Assembly: GCF_020745735.1 (NCBI RefSeq)
Contig: NW_026867443.1
Span: 310,001 to 361,685 of the forward strand
DNA: 51,685 bases
Source of the DNA: Hemiscyllium ocellatum
Taxonomy: Eukaryota
Direction of reading: 5' to 3'
Position numbers and translations under genes: made by a program. Of this stretch, positions 13,125-51,685 are shown piece after piece; positions within the stretch are counted from its first letter, which is position 1; each line of letters opens with the position of its first letter. The notes beneath the pieces were generated by a model. The model saw only the letters and a program-made list of their open reading frames with translations. It was not told where the DNA came from and searched no databases.

Positions 13125-14035
13125 TCCTGGTCACCACATTCTGAGAAGGATGTGATTGTACTTGAGAGGGTGCAGAGATTTACCAAGATGCTGCCTGGGA
13201 TGGAGGGTCAGCTGTGGGGAAATCTTGGAAAGGTTGGGATTGTTTCCTTGGAGCAGTGAAGGCTGAGAGGGGACATGATAGAGGGGGATAAGATTATTTG
13301 GGGCAGTGATACTGTGGGTAAGAAGGCACTTTATATATCAGTAAAGGACTCAATAACCTGTGTCCCAGGTAACACAGACATGGACACATAGAAACTCGGA
13401 ACTGGAGTAGGCCTTTTGGCCCTTTGAGTCTGCTCTGTCATTCAGTATGATCATGGCTGATCCTCTCTCTCAAAACCATATTCCTGCTTTCTCCCTATTC
13501 CCTTCATGCTGTTAAAATGCAAAACAATTATCTCTCTCTTTTTCTTGAATTTATTCAGTTCCTTGGGTTCCACAGTTGTCCTACCCTTTGAGTGAAGAAA
13601 TGTTTCCTCATCTCAGTCCAAAATGGTCTACCCTGTATCCCCCTGAGACTGGGTCCCCTGATTCCAGACTTCCCAGCCAGGGGAAACCTCCTCCTGTCCA
13701 GCCCTGTTAGAATTTTAAACATCTCAATCAGATTCCCTCTCATCTTTCTAAACTTGAGTGAGTCCAGGCCCAGTCAAATTGGAGTGATAGGAGAATTGAG
13801 GAGAACTGTTTTCACCCAGAGGGTGGTGGGAGTCTGGAACTCACTGCCTGAAAGGCTGGTTGAGTCACAAACTCTCGTGACATTGGAGCAGTGTTTAGAT
13901 ATTCCCTTGTGTTGCTGTAGCCTCCAGGGTGATGGGCCAAGAGCTGGAGGATGGGATTAGTGTCATTAGATCTTTGTTTACTCACATGGACACAATGGGC
14001 CAAATGGCCTCATTCAATGTTGTTCACATCAATGA
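13125..14035. mobile_element. Three short CR1 3' fragments (+, -, +)
   Basis: Repeated RGDLIE/FTQRVV-type motifs on alternating strands. Confidence 0.7.
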
Positions 14036-14121: not shown

Positions 14122-14171
14122 ATTTACATAGGAACACCCAGTCAGACTCTCACAGGCTGCAGCTTTATAAA
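14122..14171 (+). promoter_or_regulatory. Ig light-chain V promoter: octamer variant and TATA box
   Basis: ATTTACAT at 14122-14129 (1 mismatch to ATTTGCAT) and TTTATAAA at 14164-14171, 61 bp before the leader ATG; the standard IgL promoter layout. Confidence 0.7.
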
Positions 14172-14231: not shown

Positions 14232-14280
14232 ATGATTTCACACATCCAGCTGATCTGGCCCCCGGCATTCTGTGTCGCAG
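14232..14280 (+). pseudogene. IGKV: Ig kappa leader exon (MISHIQLIWPPAFCVA-G) of the pseudo-V
   Basis: ATG at 14232, signal-peptide-like 16 codons plus 1 nt, phase-1 donor G|GTACAA at 14281; intron 14281-14466 ends CCTCAG. Confidence 0.9.
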
Positions 14281-14466
14281 GTACAAATCTCTCTCCTTCC
14301 ACCTTGAATCTTCAGCTGCTCTCCATTCCACTCCAATTCCACTGACTTGTGATTGAAGGGAAAATGCTGAAACCAGAAGAATGCTCTTTGTCTCCAACAA
14401 TCTCTCATTTGACAGGCTCTTTCTGTGACAGTTCTGACTTCACTGTGATTCTCTCTGACCCCTCAG

Positions 14467-14762
14467 TTATCAGTGGGGACATCATCATGACCGAGTCTCC
14501 CCCGGTGCTGTTAATGGGACTGGGCCAGACTGCAACCACCACCTGGATGACCAGTCAAAGCATTAGCAGCTACCTTGCTTGGTACCAGCAGTGAGAAGGT
14601 CTGAAACCCTCTCTCCTTATCTATGATGCAACAAATCGATTCACAGGAGTCTCCGATCGATTCACCGGCAGTGGATCAGGGACCAGTTTCACCCTGACAA
14701 TCAGCAACGTTCAGAATGAAGATGTCGCTGACTATTACTGTCAGCAGTATAGCAGCAGCCTT
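14467..14762 (+). pseudogene. IGKV: Ig kappa-type (shark type III/NS4-like) V exon, pseudogene
   Basis: Reads [100 protein letters not shown] at 14592-14594; TGG at 14544-14546 where the first Cys belongs. Confidence 0.95.
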
Positions 14763-14790
14763 TACAGTGATACAGTGCCATACAAAATCC
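14763..14790 (+). promoter_or_regulatory. V recombination signal sequence, 12-bp spacer, defective heptamer
   Basis: TACAGTG (14763-14769) + 12 nt ATACAGTGCCAT + ACAAAATCC (14782-14790); the essential first C is T. Confidence 0.9.
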
Positions 14791-15234: not shown

Positions 15235-15273
15235 GGTTTTTGTACAGCCTCTGCACTGGGAGCTCTCACTGTG
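15235..15273 (-). promoter_or_regulatory. J recombination signal sequence, 23-bp spacer, perfect consensus
   Basis: + strand GGTTTTTGT (15235-15243) + 23 nt + CACTGTG (15267-15273). V-12/J-23 is the kappa arrangement. Confidence 0.95.
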
Positions 15274-15308
15274 GTACACGTTCGGTAAAGGAACCAAACT
15301 CAAACTGA
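15274..15308 (+). CDS. IGKJ: Ig kappa J segment (YTFGKGTKLKL), unrearranged
   Basis: FGxG motif directly after the RSS; the only in-frame phase-1 donor is A|GCAAGT at 15309. Confidence 0.95.
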
Positions 15309-15759
15309 GCAAGTAAACCTCAATTGTCCGTTATTAACCCTGTCAATACTGAAATACACTTTCTAAAATACAGTTACTGACTTGTTGAAGGTGTTAATGG
15401 GGAGCTGCAGTGAATGAAATGGTTGATTGAGGAGCACTGTGTCGAACAGGGTGTCCAGCTGTACTTCTTTAGTTCCATTGCCCCACTTAAGCAGCAAGAC
15501 AGAAGTCAGTCAGTTTTACTCACTGTGTGGAGGAGCTCTGTCCATTTGCAGCCTGTGGTCCCATTCCTGCAGCATGGAGTGAAATCAGTGAGTAACCTCC
15601 TGCCAGTCTCAGTGTGACAGACACGGGCAGATTTTGATGTGAGCTCTGGCTCCCTGTCTCAGTCTCTGATCTCACTGACCTCAGCAGCAGCAGCACAGTG
15701 AGACACCAAGCTCCCACCTCCCCCAGCTTTAACTCTGCTCAATCACACAATCACAGAAT

Positions 15760-20189: not shown

Positions 20190-22220
20190 GAGAAATAGGA
20201 GCAGAAATCAGCCATTCAGCCCATGGAATCTGCTCTGCCATTTGACCTTGGCAGATATGCTTCTCACCCCATTCTCCTGCCTGCTCCACAGGAACTTTCC
20301 ATCCCCTTAACAATCATGAACCTATCTACCTCTATCTTAAATACACTCAGTGACTTGGCCTCCCTGCCCTCTGTAACAATGAGTTCCATAGATCCACCAC
20401 CCTCTGGCTGAAGAAATCCCTCCTCATCTCAGCTCGGAAGGGTCGGCCCTTCATTCTGAGGCTGTGCTGCGGTTACCTCGTCTCTCCTGTATTTGGAAAC
20501 ATCTTCTCCCCATCCACTCTATCCAGGTCTATCTGTATTCTGCAAATTTCAATAAGATCCCTACTCATCCTTCTAAACTCCATTGAGTACAGACACAGAG
20601 TCCTTAACCGTGCCTCATATGACAAGCCCTCCATCCCCAGGATCATTCTTGTAAACCCCTCCAGTGCCAGCACATCGTTTCAAAGAATATGGATCCTAAA
20701 TCTGCTCACAATATTCCAAATTCAGACTGACCAGAGCCTTACACAGCCTCAGCAGTACATCTCTGCTCTTGTATTCTGGCCCTATTGAAATGAGTGCTAA
20801 CATTTCATTAGCCTTCCCAAGCACAAACTGGACCTGCCTGTTAACCTGAAGAGAAACCTGAATGAGGTTTGTGCTTTAGATTTCCAAAGGCTTTCCTCAT
20901 TTAGAAAATACCTCCACACCCTGACTCCATTGATTCCTGAAATATCATCAAAAATGTCTCCACAATCTCCTCGGTGATCTCCTTCAGAACACATTGGTGT
21001 AATTCATCTAGTCTGGGTGAGTTATCCACACTCAGACATTTCAGCTTCCCCAGTACCTCCTCCTTAGTAATGGCCACTGCTCTCACCTCTGTCCCCTGAC
21101 AGTCTTGAAGTTCTGGGACACTGCTGGTGTTTTCCATTGTGCAGACTGATGTAATGTATGTATTCAATTCCTCTGCTTTTTCTTCATTTCCTATTATTCT
21201 TTTTCCAATGTCTATTTCTGTTTCCCTCTTCCTTTTTATATATCTGATGAAATTCTTGCAATATTCTTTTATATTACTGGCTCGCTTTCCCCCACATTTC
21301 ACCTTCTGTACCCTGAATGTTTTTTTTGTTATCCTCTACAGGTTTTTAAAGACTTCCTAATCCTCTGGCCTCCCACTATTTTCCACCACATTGTGTGCTT
21401 TTTCTTTTGCTTTTATGCTGTCCTTGACCTCCCTCATCAGCCATGGTTACATTGTCCTCCCCTTAGTGTGTTTCTTCTTTTTTGGGATAAATTCCTACTC
21501 TGCTTCCTGAATTACCCCCAGAAACTCTGCTGTTTGCTGCCACACCATCTTACCTGCTCAGCTCCCCTTCCAATCAACTCTGACCAGCTCCTTCCTCACG
21601 TCTTTGTCGTTCCCTTTACTCAATTGAAATACTGTTCCATCTGATTGCAGCATCTGCCTCTCAAACTGCAGGGGGAATTCTATCGTATTATGGTCACTTA
21701 TCCAGAGGGACACTTTCATCTTCAGCTCACTGACCAAGTTTGCCTCATTACACATCACTGAATCCAGAACTGCCTGTTCCAAACCGCAAGCTGTTTCAAA
21801 AACCATCTCATAGACATTCCATGAAATCTTTTTGTTGAGACGTGCTATCCAGGCCACTTATCCATTGAAGTCTGCCCTGACCTTTTTTTTATGACTTTTC
21901 TGTCTCCTGATTGATTTCCTTCCCCACACGCTGTTTACTGCTTGGAGACCTGAACTTGCATCAGATTCTTTATTTCTTGGGTTCCTCAACACTCCCCACA
22001 CAGATTCTACACCTTCTGACTGTACAACAAGCTTATTGTGTATATCTTGTGCATTTAAGTAGAACACCCTCAGTCCTACATTGACTGCCCTCCTTCTCAT
22101 CATTGTCCTCTTATCTGCTGTGCTTGACATTTGATTCCTGATTCCTTCCATGCTCTCAGTCCTATTACATCTTCTAGAATCTTAGCTAACCTCTCCTAAG
22201 CCCTCCTCCACTTTAACTAG
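20190..22220 (-). mobile_element. CR1 ORF2 with internal deletions
   Basis: Reverse-strand EAVLDSVMCNE, SDHNTIEF, KAEELNTYITSV, DNSPRLDELH, RRMSRDLIE motifs. Confidence 0.8.
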
Positions 22221-22689
22221 TTTAAATTTCTTGGAAACTCAATTTACCTCGATTTGGAGCATCACTTTGTCTCCCTGACTCGGAATGCTTCGTGAACTTA
22301 GACACAAAATCTTTAAGTTTGATCTATTATTGATTTTCCCTGCACATTTATGGTTCATTTGATGTTCAAAAATTCCATCCCTTCCTTTTATTTACTTGTA
22401 ACAATCAATCCCATCACTAACCAGCAATCCTACCTTCTCCTTTATCTTCTATTTTCTCAGTTTCCATTCAACTGAACCAAATTACTTTCTCTTTGGGTTG
22501 AGTTCAGGCCTATATTTATCATTGAGCCAACATCATTATTGCTCTTTGATGTCATTGCTTCCAGTGGGATCTTGCTGTGCAGAAATTGGCTGCCCCTTTC
22601 CTGAAATTGCAACAGTGACTGGTTTTCAAGCAAAGTGTAACTGTCTTTGGGAGAGCCTGAGGTGCTGAGGGCTTGATTGAAACACAATT

Positions 22690-23534: not shown

Positions 23535-23872
23535 AGGTGATGATTTAATGGTACTATTGCTGAGCTGTTCATCCAGAGATCCAGATTAATGTTCTGGGGG
23601 CCAGAGTTAGAATCCTGCTGCAGCAGATGGTGGAATGTGAATTCCATAAAACAATCTACAATTAAGTGTCGAATGATGACCATGAAACAATTATTGATTG
23701 TCAGGAAAAAGCCATCTGATTCCCTGATGTCCTTGAGGGAAGGAAGCTGCCATCCTTACCATGTGACTCCAGACCCACAGCAATGTGGTTGACTCTAAAC
23801 TGCCCTCTGGGTGATGAGGGATGGGCAATAAATGCTGATCCTAGCAGTGACACTCACATCCAAGAAGCAATT
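23535..23872 (+). mobile_element. tRNA-derived SINE with LINE-derived 3' tail
   Basis: Decayed tRNA-like head; tail AGGGATGGGCAATAAATGCTG..CAGTGACAC..CACATCC shared with 34545-34670 and 50030-50110. Confidence 0.65.
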
Positions 23873-24010
23873 TGAACAATGCCTGTTTATTTCTGGGCTT
23901 TGTTAGGTATTGGCTACAAATGTTCAAATGGATTGTTTTGCCAGTGAATGTTCAGAGAGTTAAAATCAGTTTGAATAAAAGGGATTAAAATTGTTTCTCT
24001 TGTCTTTCAG

Positions 24011-24339
24011 GCCGTGAGAACTCTCAGCCCAAGCTGACCCTGCTGCCCCCCTCCCTGGAGCAGGTCAATGCCAAGGGCACTGCCACCCTGGTGTGTCTTG
24101 CCAATCACTTCTATCCCGATGAGCTGGAGGTGCAGTGGAAGAAGGATGGTGCAGTCATTTCGGACGGGGTTCAGACCAGCAACTACCTGCGAGCTTTGGA
24201 CAGCACCTACAGTGTCAGCAGCCTGCTGACCCTCTCTGGGTCTGACTGGGAGTCCGACGCTCGCTTCTCCTGTGCCCTCACCCACGTGACCCTCCCCTCT
24301 CCCCTCAGCAAGAGCATCAGGAGATCAGAATGCATGTAG
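24011..24339 (+). CDS. IGKC: Ig kappa constant exon, copy 1 (intact)
   Basis: Acceptor TCTTTCAG|GC (phase 1); RENSQPKLTLLPPSLEQVNAKGTATLVCLANHFYPDELEVQWKKDG...YSVSSLLTL...FSCALTHVTLPSPLSKSIRRSECM*; canonical C, W, C and penultimate interchain Cys present. Confidence 0.97.
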
Positions 24340-24865
24340 TGTGTTCAAGACAGTCCACAGAGGAGACACAACTTTAAATAGAACAGGGCTGAGCTGGCAG
24401 GACAAAGGTCATTGTCAGAACTGAATTTCAACTCTCTTCCTTCTCAGGACCAGCTCAGAGACATTTCTGAGGTTCAGGGGTTAAGGCAGGTCATTGGGAC
24501 AGAGTAGATAGAGATTTACGCTGTGTCAAACCCCATGCTGTCCCTGTTCTGGGAGTGTTTGGCGGGGGCAGAGTTGACTTGTGATGCCAAGTAAAATCTC
24601 TTGAAGTTGCTAAAGACTGTCAGCTGTACAAAACAATGTGAACCTCAGAAGTCTCTGTTTCAGTAAACCAGATCTCCTTCCTGCTCAGCCGCCAGTTCCA
24701 ATTTAAGGTTTTGTCACTGTTTAAAGGGACAGGATTCTCGTGCTATTGAGAAAATCTCCACAAGTGTTTTCCTCAAGCTCCAATGTGGCTGTGAATTTGT
24801 GCAGCTTCCTCTGTCTGGGCTGTTAATTGCAGTCTGTTTTCTGTCAATGTCAATCTGGAAAAGGG

Positions 24866-24871
24866 AATAAA
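24866..24871 (+). terminator. Polyadenylation signal of C copy 1
   Basis: AATAAA about 530 nt after the stop, conserved at the same place after copy 2. Confidence 0.7.
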
Positions 24872-25094
24872 GATGAAGAAGATTCAGTCTCTGTCTCTGT
24901 GCGCTTTAGAAATTGACCACTCCATTCAGCTGATTGGCTGCATTTCAGCATGGCATTGTCACAATTGGCTCATTGGCCTGTCAATCAATGACACATCCGT
25001 TGTAGAGGATACTGACAGCCAATCATCAATCACTTTCAAATGATCCCTTTGATCTGGAATCACTTGAGGTTACAAGATTCCAAACAGATTTCCA

Positions 25095-27989: not shown

Positions 27990-30900
27990 TTTTTAGATAT
28001 TTTTATTAGAAATTTAACATTTTTACAAATTTACAAAAATAAACAAAACTCTCAAATTTAAACATTGATGTACAATTAAATACACTAGTCAAAATTTAAC
28101 AAAGAAAAGAAAGAAAAAAAAAATAAAAACTCAACTTTCTATTAATCTAACCTATAACTAACCAGAGTGTATACTTAAGTCTCTGACATGCTCGGAATGT
28201 ATTAACATCAAACATAATAAAACCCGTATTCGTGCGGGATTCCTCTCCCAAGGGGCCCCGGAGCAGCCAGGTTTGTAATCTTCACTAAATAAAGGCCCTT
28301 GTTAGGATGGCCGAAATATCTGCATTTATGTAATTCAAAAAGGGCTGCCATATTTTATAAAATAATTCAGTCTTTCGGTGCACCATATTTGTAAGGAAGT
28401 CAAGGGGAATACATTCCATAATTAATCTGTGCCAATTTGAAAGTCCAGGGGAGCCCTCAGCCACCCAGTTCACCAAAATATTTTTCCTTGCACAGAAAGA
28501 GAGAATAGAAAATAGTCTCTTCCCGTGCGTATCCAGGGAGGAAAAGTTCGAAAAGCCCAAAAGGAGAGATATAGGGTCCACTCTAATTTCCGTTCCTAAA
28601 ATTTCTGTCACTTTAGTCCAATATCTACGGATCTTATGACAAGTCCATAGGCAATGTACAAGAGTGCCCACCTCTATTTTGCATTTGGGACACATTGGAG
28701 ATGCTCCTGCCTTAAATTTTGCCAAATGAGCCTTTGCTATATGGGCCCTATGAAGTATCTTCAGCTGGATAGCCTGGGTTCTGTTACAGATAGTAATTCT
28801 TCTAGCATTTTCCCAAATATCATTCCACGTTTCTTTAGAGATTTCTAGTCCCAAATCCTGATCCCATGTTTTAAGCAGATTGTCCATATCTCCCGACACT
28901 TCATCATGGAGTAAATGATAAATAGTACTGACGGATGATACCCCAAATGGTCGTAGGACATTACATTCTCTATCTGATTTATAAAGACTATCTATTAAAG
29001 TAGTCTTCTTCTGTATATAATCTCGAATTTGGAAGTATCGAAAGAGGTCTCCATTGGGTAATCCGAATTTCTGACGCAGCTGTTCAAAGGACATCAGGAC
29101 CCCATCTTTAAATAGGTCCCCTAAACATGGGATACCCTTGTATCTCCAGAGTTTAAAAGTGGCATCTGTAAACCCCGGTTGGAATCCCCATGCCCCTACT
29201 ATCAGTGCATGGGGGGATGTTTTATGTAAATTACCCTCATTTTGCCGCATTATATTCCAGGCCTTAATTGTGTTTAGTATTATGGTGTTTTTAAAGTGAT
29301 CTGTAATGATTTTCCTCTTGTCTGAAAATAAGAGGTTAATAAGTGGGTATTTTACTTGAGAGGCCGCGATGTCCAGCCAGATTGATTGTGGATCAGACAA
29401 GAGCCAATCAGCTATGTAACTTAATAGGGAACTTAACTGATATTTCCTAAAGTCTGGAAAGTCCAGTCCTCCCCTTGCCTGTGGAAGCTGTAGCTTCTTC
29501 AGCTTAATAAGGGGCCGTCTATGATTCCAGATAAAGGAACCCAGCCAGCCATATAATTTATGTAGGGGCAAAAAACATATCAATTCTTGTATGACCTTTA
29601 TGTGGATTAGAGTAGAAAGACAAATCTCTACCCTGTGGATGAAGACATCTCCATACATCTACCAATCCTAATTCTTTATTCAGATCCGCCAATTGTCTCG
29701 ATCTGGGAGATACTCCGGCAGCACTCTTGGGAATCCTATCTATTTCCGGATCCATAATACAATTAAAGTCTCCCCCTATAATTGTATGACGGGCACCAAA
29801 GGCCATCAATTTTGAAAAAGCTTCCGTTAGAAATTTAGAGGGGTGTGCCGGGGGGCAGTACAAATTTAGAATCCCATATTCCTCTCCATTTACGAGGGCT
29901 TTAATCAAAATATATCGTCCAGATTCGTCATTTATCTGATTTAGAATGTTGAAAGGGAAATTCTTCCGAACAAGAATAACAACTCCCCTGCTTTTTGAGC
30001 TAAAAGAAGAGAGAAAGGCCTGATCAAATCCACCCTGCCGTAATTTTAAGTGTTCTTTATCTGACAGGTGTGTCTCCTGTAGGAGAGCTATATCAACTCT
30101 TTCTTTCTTAAGATTTGATAATCTTTTCTTCCTTTTGACTGGAGAATTACTCCCCTTGACATTCCAGGTGCACCACTTAACCGACTGATCAACCACAATC
30201 ATCTGGGCAGATCCGAGACCCCTTGGGAGGGGAAATCCTATCTGGAACATCCCGAGCATGGAGCATATAGAATTTACAAAAATAAAGGTTCGCTAATACA
30301 CTCACAACAATATAATAAAAAATTATTTCTAAATAACAAAAATATAAAACATACCTAAATGGAGATTTTCCCCCTTGTTCCCAGGGAGCGTCACTTCCTC
30401 TCCAAAAGTCCATCTTATCCTCTCCCAACCAATGCCCCACCCTTGACCCGGGTGCTCCTCAATAAAATGAGGAGAATTCAAATATAATACAAAGCTAGAG
30501 TTAACAGTGAGCACCCTACCCCCATCCACACCAACACCTGGATATATTTTGGAATGTTAATACCATATATAAATATATAACTGTAAAATTACAATCTCAA
30601 CATTTGTATTATTATATCTCAATTAGATATAATAATACAAAATAACAGGGGAGAAACAACCCCGCTCCTAAAGACAGAGGTAAAATAGAATAAGGCAACC
30701 ACCTCCCCCCACCAACATTAACCAATCGCCCCAACATATATATACACACATACATACCCACATATATACATAAAGTAATGAAAGAAAACAAACCCAAGCG
30801 GGGGGGGGGGGCAGGGGGGGGGGGGGGCGGGGGAGAAAATCAATTCCCTCTCCCCGCCCCCCATGATAATATTAAACAATGAGGTTAAAAAAAAGAGAAA

Positions 30901-34239: not shown

Positions 34240-34670
34240 ATGATCGGAGGTGTATAGATTAAAGATAAATGGCCGAAGGTTAAGAGGGAACATAAGGAAA
34301 CACATTTTCACCCAGAGGGTGGTGACAGTCTGGGACTCACTGCCTGGAGAGGTGGTTGAGGCAGAAACCCTCCCATAACATTGAAGTGTTTCAATGTGCA
34401 GCTGTGATGCCAAGGCATACAGGGCTACAGGCCAAGTGCTGGAGCATGGAATTAGAATAGTGAGGTGGATGTTTGACTGGCTTTGGCTCAATGGGGCAAA
34501 GCGCCTTGATCGTGTAGACCTGTTGTAGATGTCTGACTCTGCCAGGACTCCAGCAATGTGGCTGACCCTTACCTGCCATTTGAAAGGCCGAGCAAGCCAC
34601 TCAATTTCAGGGCAGTTAGGGATGGGGAACAAATGCTGGTCTTGCCAGTGACACCCACATCCCAGGAAAG
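34240..34670 (+). mobile_element. CR1 3' fragment followed by SINE 3' tail
   Basis: FTQRVVTVWDSLP motif; tail homologous to 23770-23870. Confidence 0.6.
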
Positions 34671-35099
34671 AATAGATGGATTCAGTGGTAACACCGTCAC
34701 CTGAACCTGCAGGTTTCAAGCCCCACTCCAGACACTGGAGCACTATCCTGAGGCTGGCAAAGACAAAGACGCCATCTGCTGGATGATCGGTTAAACCACT
34801 GCCCTCTCAGGTCGATGTGAATATAAGGGCTTTGTGACCATCTCAGGGAAACTCTCCCCAGTGTGCTGGCCAATGCTTCTCTTAAAACCAATGGTATTAA
34901 AACAGATACAAAACCAAATTACTGCAAATCTCAAATAGAAGCACGATGCTGGAGAAAGGGAACAGGTGCAGCCCCTGTGGGGAGAGGAGGAGTTAGCTTT
35001 TGGGTTCAGTGATGTTTTATCAAAATGGCAGCAAAATTATATTTTATTTAATTTTATGTTGTTTTATATTATTTTATTTAAATTTTGATGAAAAAAAGT

Positions 35100-49019: not shown

Positions 49020-50251
49020 GCGGGGCCTCAAGTTCAATTCCTGATCCTTTCCTCTCGATCCTATTGCTTGGTCTGGATACTTTAATAAAGTGTCCTGAGC
49101 CCCTACCTTCTTCAAACAGTTTAAATTTCTTGAAGCTTGATTTACCTTGGCTTGTGTGGGACCACTTTGTCTGCATTATTCTGAATGGGTCATGCATTAA
49201 GAGACAAAGCCTTTAAGTTTGTTCTAGTATTGAGCTTCCCTACACTTTTAAGTTTCCTTAGTACAATATGACATTTACAATATTCCAACCCTTCCTTTTA
49301 TTTCCTGGTAACAATCAATCCCGTCACTACCCAGTAATCCTCCCTTCTCCTTTAACTTACATTTTCTCATTCTCTATCCAACTCTTCCAGTTACTTTCTC
49401 TTTGAATCGTATTCAGGCTGATATTTATCCCTGAACAAACATCACTCAAAATGTTCCTTGGTTCATTGTTGCTTGTGGGATCTTGCTGTGCACAATCCAG
49501 CTTGCACATTTCCTATATGACAACAACAACCATATTTCAAACAAGCCCCACACTGTCTGCAAATGTCTTGAGGACAGCATGAATCTTTCTTTTCATTGGA
49601 TGAACTGGGAGTCTTTCAGATGTGAAAGATGCCGTTCCAATGTTGTACAGTCCTCCTCCTGACAAAGTTCCTGCTTTGTCCCTTTTTTTTTGAATGGGTC
49701 TCATACATTCCTTCATTCTCTTGTTCTTACGGTGATTATCAACATCACTGGGATTTCCTTGACTTCATTTGATGCATTTTATCCTGTCAGCTCTTTGCTT
49801 TCACCCCTGCATTTCGTCTTTCAGCCCAGTTTTACCAAGTCACTGCTCAGTTCAGTAAAATGGTTTGTTCCCAAATGAAAACTTTTACACTTGTTGCACG
49901 GTTCTCCATTCCCATCCCTACCCTCAGTCTCACTGAGTTCTGATCCCTGTCACTGAAATGCTTCCCCATTGATAGCCCTTCCAGCTGCCCACATTCATTC
50001 TCTAAGCAATGGTCCAAAACTGTCCCTTTTCTTTCACCATCACCTTCTCAGGGGCAATTAGGGATGGGTAATAAATGCTGGCCGTGCCAGTGACACATCC
50101 CAAGAAGCAATTTTTAAAAATCCCTGTCCTTTTATGGGGTTTGTTAGGTATTGGATACAAGTGTTCAAACGGATTGTTTTACCAGTGAATGTTCAGAGAG
50201 TTGAAATCAGTTTGAATGGCAGGGATTAAAATTGTTTCTCTTGCCTTTCAG

Positions 50252-50580
50252 GCCGTGAGAACTCTCAGCCCAAGCTGACCCTGCTGCCCCCCTCCCCGGA
50301 GCAGGTCAATGCCAAGGGCACTGCCACCCTGGTGTGCCTTGCCAATCACTTCTATCCTGATGAGCTGGAGGTGCAGTGGAAGAAGGACGGTGCAGTCATT
50401 TCGGACGGGGTTCAGACCAGCAACTACCTGCGAGCTTCGGACAGCACCTACAGTGTCAGCAGCCTGCTGACCCTCTCTGGGTCTGGTTGGGAGTCCGACG
50501 CTCACTTCTCTTGTGCCCTCACCCATGTGACCCTCCCCTCTTCCCTCAGCAAGAGCATCAGGAGATCAGAATGTGTATAG
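50252..50580 (+). CDS. IGKC: Ig kappa constant exon, copy 2 (intact, no V/J found upstream)
   Basis: Acceptor CCTTTCAG|GC; RENSQPKLTLLPPSPEQV...SECV*; 14 nt and 6 aa differences from copy 1 (hand count). Confidence 0.97.
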
Positions 50581-51092
50581 AATGTTCAAGACAGTCCACA
50601 GAGGAGACACAACTTTCAATAGAACTGGACTGAGCTGGTAGGTCAAAGGTCATTGTCAGCACTGAATTTCAATTCTCTTCCTTCTCAGGACTGGCTCAGA
50701 GACACTTCTGAGGTTCAAGGGTTAAGGCAGGTCATTGCGATCATCAAAAAGAAGCTTTACTCTGTATCAAACCCCATGCTATCCCTGTTTTGGGAGTGTT
50801 TGACTGGGGCAGTGATGTCCTGTGATGCCAACTCAAACCTCTCGAAAATGCTGAAGACTGTCAGCTGTACAAAACAATGTGAACCTCAGAAGTCTCTGCT
50901 TCAGTAAACCAGATCTCCTTCCTGCTCAGCTGCCAGTTCCAATTTCAGGTTTTGTCACTGTTTAAAGGGACAGGATTCTCATGTTATTGAGAAAATCTCC
51001 ACAAGTGTTTTCCTCAAGCTCCATTGTGGCTGTGAATTTGTGCAGCTTCCTCTGTCTGGGCTGCTTTCCGTCAATGTCAATCTAGAAAAGGG

Positions 51093-51098
51093 AATAAA
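51093..51098 (+). terminator. Polyadenylation signal of C copy 2
   Basis: AATAAA in the context GGGAATAAAGATGAAGAAGATT, identical to copy 1. Confidence 0.7.
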
Positions 51099-51139
51099 GA
51101 TGAAGAAGATTCCGTCTCTGTCTCGTGTGTGCTTTGGGA

Positions 51140-51316
51140 ATGGCCCGAGCTGAAGCCTACGGGAAAGGGTGTGTGAAGCGTTAACCTCCACCCTCAAGGC
51201 CTGGAGAAAGAGGGGAGAATCGTGGGGGCAATGGGGTCCCCGGAGCAGGTGGGCAATGCTACCATTGTGTCCAGAAGGGGCACTTACAGCAGGAATGCGG
51301 GGTAACAAGGAAATAA
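51140..51316 (+). mobile_element. Gag nucleocapsid-like fragment with CCHC zinc knuckle (ERV/LTR element remnant)
   Basis: Frame reads *PPPSRPGERGENRGGNGVPGAGGQ-CYHCVQKGHLQQEC-GVTRK*; knuckle codons at 51257-51298 fit C-x2-C-x3-G-H-x4-C. Confidence 0.55.
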
Positions 51317-51685
51317 TCCCCCAAAGATGGGAAAAGAAGGAAGGGGGACACGGGAACACAATAATCTGATGAAATTCCCATCAACCCTCACCCATCCCTT
51401 AGGCACAGCAAGATCACAAGCCAAGAAATTCAAATCAACTGTTTAGGAGCCAGAGCCACTGGGAACCCTGTATTGATGAATATGACCGCAGGATTTTGTT
51501 ACTCAGAATCACAATTCCACAGGGTTTGGGAAATAAATATTCTATAAATTAAACCTGGGTTTCTTTCCTCCTCCAATGAGATGGAATTGCGCCGTGTCCC
51601 TGGAGTCATCACAATGAGAATGTTCAGTCCGGGAGAGTCTGGGAATCACGGCTGGGGAGGGAAGTCAATGATAAACTGGTTCCAC

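Follow-up and report, generated by a model that had tools for sequence, protein, structure and literature searches.

A kappa light-chain constant exon without V or J, very probably an orphan mini-cluster tail, beside a dead cluster in Hemiscyllium ocellatum

We identified in a 51,685-nucleotide window of the Hemiscyllium ocellatum genome (the whole stretch analysed, positions 310,001 to 361,685 of contig NW_026867443.1; coordinates below are those of the window) a second kappa constant exon, C2, which is very probably the orphan tail of a kappa mini-cluster standing beside a dead cluster, rather than a further constant region belonging to the upstream unit. C2 does not detectably enter mature message. 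The tail would derive from a mini-cluster of the NS4/type III-like kind and would comprise the distal J-C intron, the C exon, the 3' untranslated region (UTR) and the poly-A signal. The C2 unit spans about 2.45 kb and carries no leader, V or J, nor the J-side part of the intron. A separate cluster (cluster 1), dead apart from its own C exon (C1), sits 26 kb upstream, and the gap between the clusters is filled by retroelement pieces and a putative copy of the last exon of CEP350. The C2 exon block may have been constrained until recently, or else refreshed by gene conversion in a large multi-copy array. The head could have been lost by deletion in place or by the copying of a unit that already lacked it. 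Such a decapitated cluster was one of two alternatives offered by an earlier note on this DNA, and it fits what we found, as only about 2.45 kb of the unit is present and neither outer flank is related to cluster 1. The C2 locus is ordinary decay in a very large kappa gene family.

The C2 exon (50252-50580, + strand) is one open frame of 109 codons that ends in a TAG stop at 50578-50580. A pyrimidine-rich tttcag acceptor precedes the exon start at 50252, in phase 1; the acceptor is identical in C1, and expressed messages use the same tttcag/GC boundary as C2. A Pfam search recognised a C1-set immunoglobulin domain (PF07654, E 4e-22) in the translation, which keeps Cys28, Trp42 and Cys88 and ends in SECV-stop, with the C-terminal Cys108 for the H-L disulphide in place. 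The length-windowed protein search with C2 returned four matches, and C2 is 79-88% identical to P0001-P0004, which include a Scyliorhinus torazame protein; against public shark kappa C protein sequences, both C1 and C2 show 79-83% identity. Two of the records, P0001 and P0002, are shark kappa light-chain fragments that stand under Aeromonas veronii and Salmonella enterica in NCBI, names that look like contamination or mislabelled records. Judged by its translation, its C1-set domain and its 94% amino acid identity to C1, the intact-looking C2 can be assigned to the light-chain C1-set exons of the shark kappa/NS4/type III family. Its 3'UTR (50581-51141, +) contains an AATAAA poly-A signal at 51093-51098 and has lost 14 bp at 51063/51064, a deletion private to C2; homology to copy 1 stops at about 51141. 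The earlier note had called C2 a second intact kappa C exon, and every detail that it gave of the exon (frame, acceptor, Cys and Trp residues, AATAAA) was correct.

Two pieces of J-C intron precede the exon. The proximal piece (50057-50251, +) is common to copy 1 and 12% diverged from it, and it starts inside a short repeat (50042-50144), within which the high-identity C block also begins. The distal-intron island (48689-49544, +), which an inserted repeat of about 250 bp (48767-49018) divides in two, is about 74% identical to copy-1 positions 22036-22633 and marks the upstream limit of the C2 unit. The earlier note had recognised that the distal intron is shared, but its start, given as about 49095, needs correction: the sharing starts at 48689 and is interrupted (48689-48767, 49018-49544 and 50057-50251). 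The short repeats at 48703-49011 and 50042-50144 reach a word depth of up to 2.6e5 in all RNA-type runs and are probably SINE-like elements.

Searches for the missing head of the unit were negative. The V of the window, the leader of that V and an intact V from catshark (P0004) served as tblastn queries; no V was found in 24340-50251, and the sole V found in the whole window is at 14232-14762. No second V emerged when all six-frame open reading frames of at least 20 codons were searched with a two-sequence V HMM with heuristics off, which found only 14232-14762. A scan of the window for FGxG/WGxG motifs gave one real J (15274-15308) and no second one. The only perfect recombination signal sequence (RSS) in the window is the 23-RSS of that J (J1), at 15235-15273. 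Loose RSS-like matches in 24340-50251 numbered three, against 1.1 +/- 1.1 expected from Markov simulations, and none of the three has V- or J-like coding beside it. We also considered as a V-upstream relic the segment at 34305-34506 (72% identical to 13809-14010, with an RSS-like match at 34827-34865) and rejected it, because it matches dispersed repeats in both orientations as well and no V-like coding follows it. Together, the tblastn, V HMM, J-motif and RSS scans confirm what had earlier been judged by eye, that no leader, V, J or RSS lies between 24340 and 50251. C2 is not a complete rearrangement-competent V-J-C mini-cluster, as it has upstream neither a leader and V with a 12-RSS nor a J with a 23-RSS. 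The nearest J is J1, which lies 35 kb upstream, has a GC donor and is separated from C2 by C1.

Cluster 1 is itself dead except for its C exon, as its V is a pseudogene and the donor of its J is GC. C1 (24011-24339, +) has an intact frame and the private residues L16, L63 and M109, polarised against the RNA majority letters. The V pseudogene (V1, 14232-14790, +) consists of a leader at 14232-14280, a 186-bp intron and a V exon at 14467-14762. At the position of Cys23 it reads TGG (Trp, 14544-14546), in FR2 it has an in-frame TGA (14592-14594), and its RSS (TACAGTG-12-ACAAAATCC, 14763-14790) begins with a TACAGTG heptamer (14763-14769). With the stop, no Cys23 and a bad heptamer, V1 is unable to encode a light chain. 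The intact catshark V (P0004) reads ...ITC... and WFQQREGQKP in the corresponding stretches and has Arg where V1 has the TGA; a CGA-to-TGA change from an Arg codon would fit. About 100 bp 5' of the V1 start codon, the octamer position (14122-14129) reads ATTTACAT, one base off ATTTGCAT, which could be a further defect or the family norm.

The J segment of cluster 1 (J1, 15235-15310, +) combines the perfect 23-RSS (15235-15273) and a coding part at 15274-15308 with a donor (15309-15310) that is GC, not GT, in the context A/GCAAGT. Its end at 15308, in phase 1, is set by the J end seen spliced in RNA (...CTGA) and by the ...FGKGTKLRL(S/T)RENSQP junctions of related proteins. Since the J exon ends in ...CTGA in phase 1, the anomaly of J1 is its GC donor, which on these letters would be weak or dead. 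A clash of phase between J1 and the C exons, which arises when the donor is read as ...AA/GT in phase 2, was dismissed on the same RNA-spliced J end and related-protein J-C junctions. Thus, the V-J-C...C layout of the earlier note holds for the second C exon but not for a working V-J, given the Cys23-to-Trp change, TGA and TACAGTG heptamer of V1 and the GC donor of J1.

The DNA between C1 and C2 contains many dispersed repeats, and the window has no N runs. A LINE fragment (28288-30292, -) includes an endonuclease domain (Pfam Exo_endo_phos, E 9e-14, 29561-30292) and a long open reading frame; its long open frames, of 457 and 244 codons, suggest a fairly young insertion that lengthened the distance from C1 to C2. 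A second reverse-transcriptase piece lies at 43104-43709 (-; Pfam RVT_1, E 1.8e-10). Read directly, the sequence at 40186-40350 (+) is an open frame of 54 codons with a stop, on the same strand as C1 and C2 and 9.9 kb upstream of C2. This frame is a putative copy of the last exon of CEP350, which would mark the interval as non-immunoglobulin filler.

The two C exons start exactly 26,241 bases apart. A comparison of 330 bases, running through the stop codon and the next base, shows 15 differences. Comparison of the translations confirmed the six amino acid differences reported earlier: exactly six residues change from C1 to C2 (L16P, L63S, D79G, R85H, P98S and M109V). Comparing the window with itself revealed only two islands shared by the copies. 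The first is distal intron (22036-22633 in copy 1; 48689-48767 plus 49018-49544 in copy 2) and is 26% diverged. The second (23814-24913 in copy 1; 50057-51141 in copy 2) spans proximal intron, exon and 3'UTR, which are 12%, 4.5% and 9.7% diverged, respectively; overall, the exon-plus-3'UTR block is about 10% diverged between the copies. The roughly 500 bp between the two islands are unrelated in copy 1 and copy 2. Within the 3'UTR, a patch at 50738-50761 has 15 differences in 24 bases from 24497-24520, the rest of the UTR being about 7% diverged, and may be a small replaced segment. The non-coding divergence of 26% in one island against about 10% in the other (p = 2e-12) is more than a single duplication followed by neutral drift suffices to explain; the two tiers call for subsequent gene conversion over a tract of about 1.1 kb, or for a constraint on exon and UTR throughout the family. 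Upstream of 48689 the self-comparison found no colinear match to cluster 1. The window ends 1.1 kb past C2, and the 545 bases past 51141 (51141-51685) match nothing anywhere in it. We therefore rejected a simple 26.6-kb tandem duplication, in view of this unmatched sequence and of the non-homologous middle of the intron. C1 and C2 are neighbours from a big family and not parent and child.

For RNA evidence, we compared four public sequencing runs of the likely source species with 48600-51685. We took run X15, which is unlabelled, as RNA-type, because its word depth is 1e5-1.6e6 over exon and UTR versus 3e2-4e3 over intron and because three contigs carry a J end spliced at 50252; X21 consists of raw single-cell RNA reads and X12 of RNA contigs. 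No public run contains either C block in full, the share never exceeding 0.5. Word shares in the best small runs were 0.35-0.37 for C1 and 0.40-0.43 for C2, and such similar partial shares indicate that neither is the dominant message. The exon changes private to C2 are D79G, R85H, P98S and five silent ones, and those private to C1 are P16L, S63L, V109M and three silent ones. Relative to the RNA majority letter, C2 has private letters at 50358, 50486/7, 50504, 50511, 50526, 50542 and 50577.

At every well-covered C2-private site the non-C2 letter was dominant in X15. Non-C2 words made up the entire depth at 50526 (71,440 of 71,440), 50617 (75,020 of 75,020) and 50946 (503,899 of 503,899), and 177,937 of 178,003 at 50542. 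The share of word depth with the C2-private letter was 0-0.04% at these four sites and 3-6% at 50358, 50577 and 50582. Consistent results came from the raw single-cell reads of X21, which were non-C2 in 11 of 11 cases at 50946, and from X12, whose single long RNA contig across the exon (440 nt) differs from C2 at 18 of 434 bases. Further, 15 contigs of X15 have the C1-like form at 51063/51064, with the 14 bases deleted from C2 still in place. In RNA, the acceptor is joined to a J end (...GGAACCAAGCTCAGACTGA) with two base differences from J1. The earlier note had proposed a search of RNA for C2-specific reads and their 5' partners; in the runs compared here, C2-private letters were missing or almost missing at the clearest sites, and the J seen is not J1.

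No C2-tagged message was seen in the three RNA-type data sets (contigs and about 2% of the raw run), a soft bound, because Logan contigs drop rare variants and the 2% of the raw run that was read holds about 11 informative reads; it leaves room for low-level or tissue-specific C2 transcripts. Within this soft bound, spliced mRNA lacks the private variants by which C2 would be known as an expressed light-chain constant gene. The C1-private letters, too, are below the 5% listing threshold in RNA and, with both sets of private letters scarce, neither exon feeds the bulk of the kappa message. RNA contigs also cover the C2 intron, at an identity of at least 95%, which places the C2 tail nearer to the tails of expressed clusters than to that of C1. 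Pre-mRNA of a paralogue is the simplest source of these contigs, and transcription through C2 could also supply them.

The open frame of C2 is unremarkable. About eight substitutions separate C2 from the expressed family consensus, and when the inferred consensus of expressed genes was given eight random substitutions (transition bias 3), frame and cysteines were kept in 67% of trials, that is, with a probability of about 0.67 of remaining intact by chance. Two weak signals count against a silent orphan. Of the eight changes on the C2 lineage, three alter the protein (P = 0.05 under random mutation), and the exon has diverged by 4.5% versus 9.7% in the 3'UTR (Fisher p = 0.006). Both signals would fit some selection on C2, and they fit a function that preceded the loss of the head, or conversion by working copies; they are too weak to argue for its present function.

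Among other accounts of the locus, an assembly artefact, with C2 an allelic copy of C1 joined as a tandem haplotig or mis-joined in a repetitive array, would be in keeping with the very large repetitive family and with public runs of which the best-matching behave as RNA, no DNA run being shown to span the region. We consider it highly improbable, because the copies have diverged by 4.5% (exon), about 10% (UTR) and 26% (distal intron), are set apart by a 14-bp indel and by private inserts in each copy, and have flanks on both sides that are neither homologous nor colinear; these differences are far past allelic divergence, and there are no N runs. The haplotig join that the earlier note had named as fatal to its own reading fails on the same grounds (copies 10-26% diverged, the indel and the non-homologous flanks), which also speak against a clean tandem duplicate. 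A variant of the orphan-tail explanation, differing from it only in history, would have C2 as a copy of an already headless duplicon that had spread in the genome and that consisted of the CEP350 last exon with a kappa C tail behind it; the V-less state would then be inherited, with conversion from working clusters keeping the exon block fresh. The putative CEP350 copy, 9.9 kb before C2 and with the same orientation, would suit this history, and so would the two tiers of divergence (26% versus about 10%, p = 2e-12), which fit a conversion tract of about 1.1 kb. However, retroelement pieces lie between C2 and the putative CEP350 copy, which may be neighbours without any relation, so that we regard this history as possible but rather unlikely.

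The earlier note had envisaged C2 as an alternative constant exon of the upstream unit, with J1 or VJ1 transcripts reading through the C1 poly-A site and splicing to C2. Such splicing would draw on the shared strand, the identical phase-1 acceptor, the open frame and the poly-A signal, and the protein changes are, as a hint, fewer than random mutation would give. Against it, V1 is dead (stop, no Cys23, bad heptamer), J1 has a GC donor, the J end found at the acceptor in RNA is not that of J1, C2-private letters are missing from RNA, and an intact C1 with its own poly-A signal and 26 kb of retroelement-rich DNA lie between; we hold it to be extremely unlikely. Could C2 serve otherwise, as a sterile or regulatory transcript, or by rearrangement between clusters that places a distant VJ, with its J donor, upstream of it? 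For teleosts, the geometry between clusters has been a topic of discussion (PMC3014032), and RNA contigs do match the C2 intron at 95% identity or more. Yet C2 has no J or RSS nearby that could take part, its private letters are absent from mature message and pre-mRNA of a paralogue explains the intron coverage, leaving this use with very little probability. Equally hard to credit is the retention of C2 as a spare constant exon, reached at low frequency by read-through splicing or inter-cluster rearrangement, in which case the lower exon divergence and the silent-change excess would reflect selection, not conversion; some shark kappa chains would then have a C region that their own mini-cluster does not encode. 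An orphan tail of a kappa mini-cluster is the reading that we retain.

The main importance of the locus is for annotation. In shark genomes with very many kappa mini-clusters, a gene cannot be deduced from an open C exon and its good signals, and a count of C exons puts the number of functional clusters too high. The locus is also a small example of how an array decays, by loss of the head, CpG-type stop mutations and mutations of RSS and donor, and it may show gene conversion keeping dead exons alive-looking. Were C2 used, the one-cluster, one-chain picture of cartilaginous-fish light chains would be broken; the evidence here points against this.

Cluster 1 resembles the nurse shark NS4 and horned shark type III genes. 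In NS4 the leader intron is 186 bp and the V-J spacer 502-524 bp (Lee, Fitch and Hsu 2000, PMC2193156); cluster 1 has a leader intron of 186 bp and a V-J spacer of 511 bp. As in NS4, the 12-RSS is on V and the 23-RSS on J, and the last base of J is an A in phase 1. NS4 pseudogenes with a TGA in FR2 and noncanonical RSS heptamers have been described (PMC2193156), and the TGA in FR2 and noncanonical heptamer of cluster 1 are defects of these known kinds. C2, in contrast to NS4 and type III clusters, has no V or J whatsoever, and the literature that we searched yielded no paper on headless C exons in shark light-chain arrays. The lambda locus has a J of its own for each C, whereas C2 has none and is therefore unreachable by rearrangement. 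In other respects, the multi-C lambda loci of mammals, with their tandem J-C pairs, and the (V-J-C)n clusters of teleosts, with pseudogene C exons (PMC2188323, PMC3014032), are comparable to the locus described here: several C exons lie on one strand, and some of them are non-functional.
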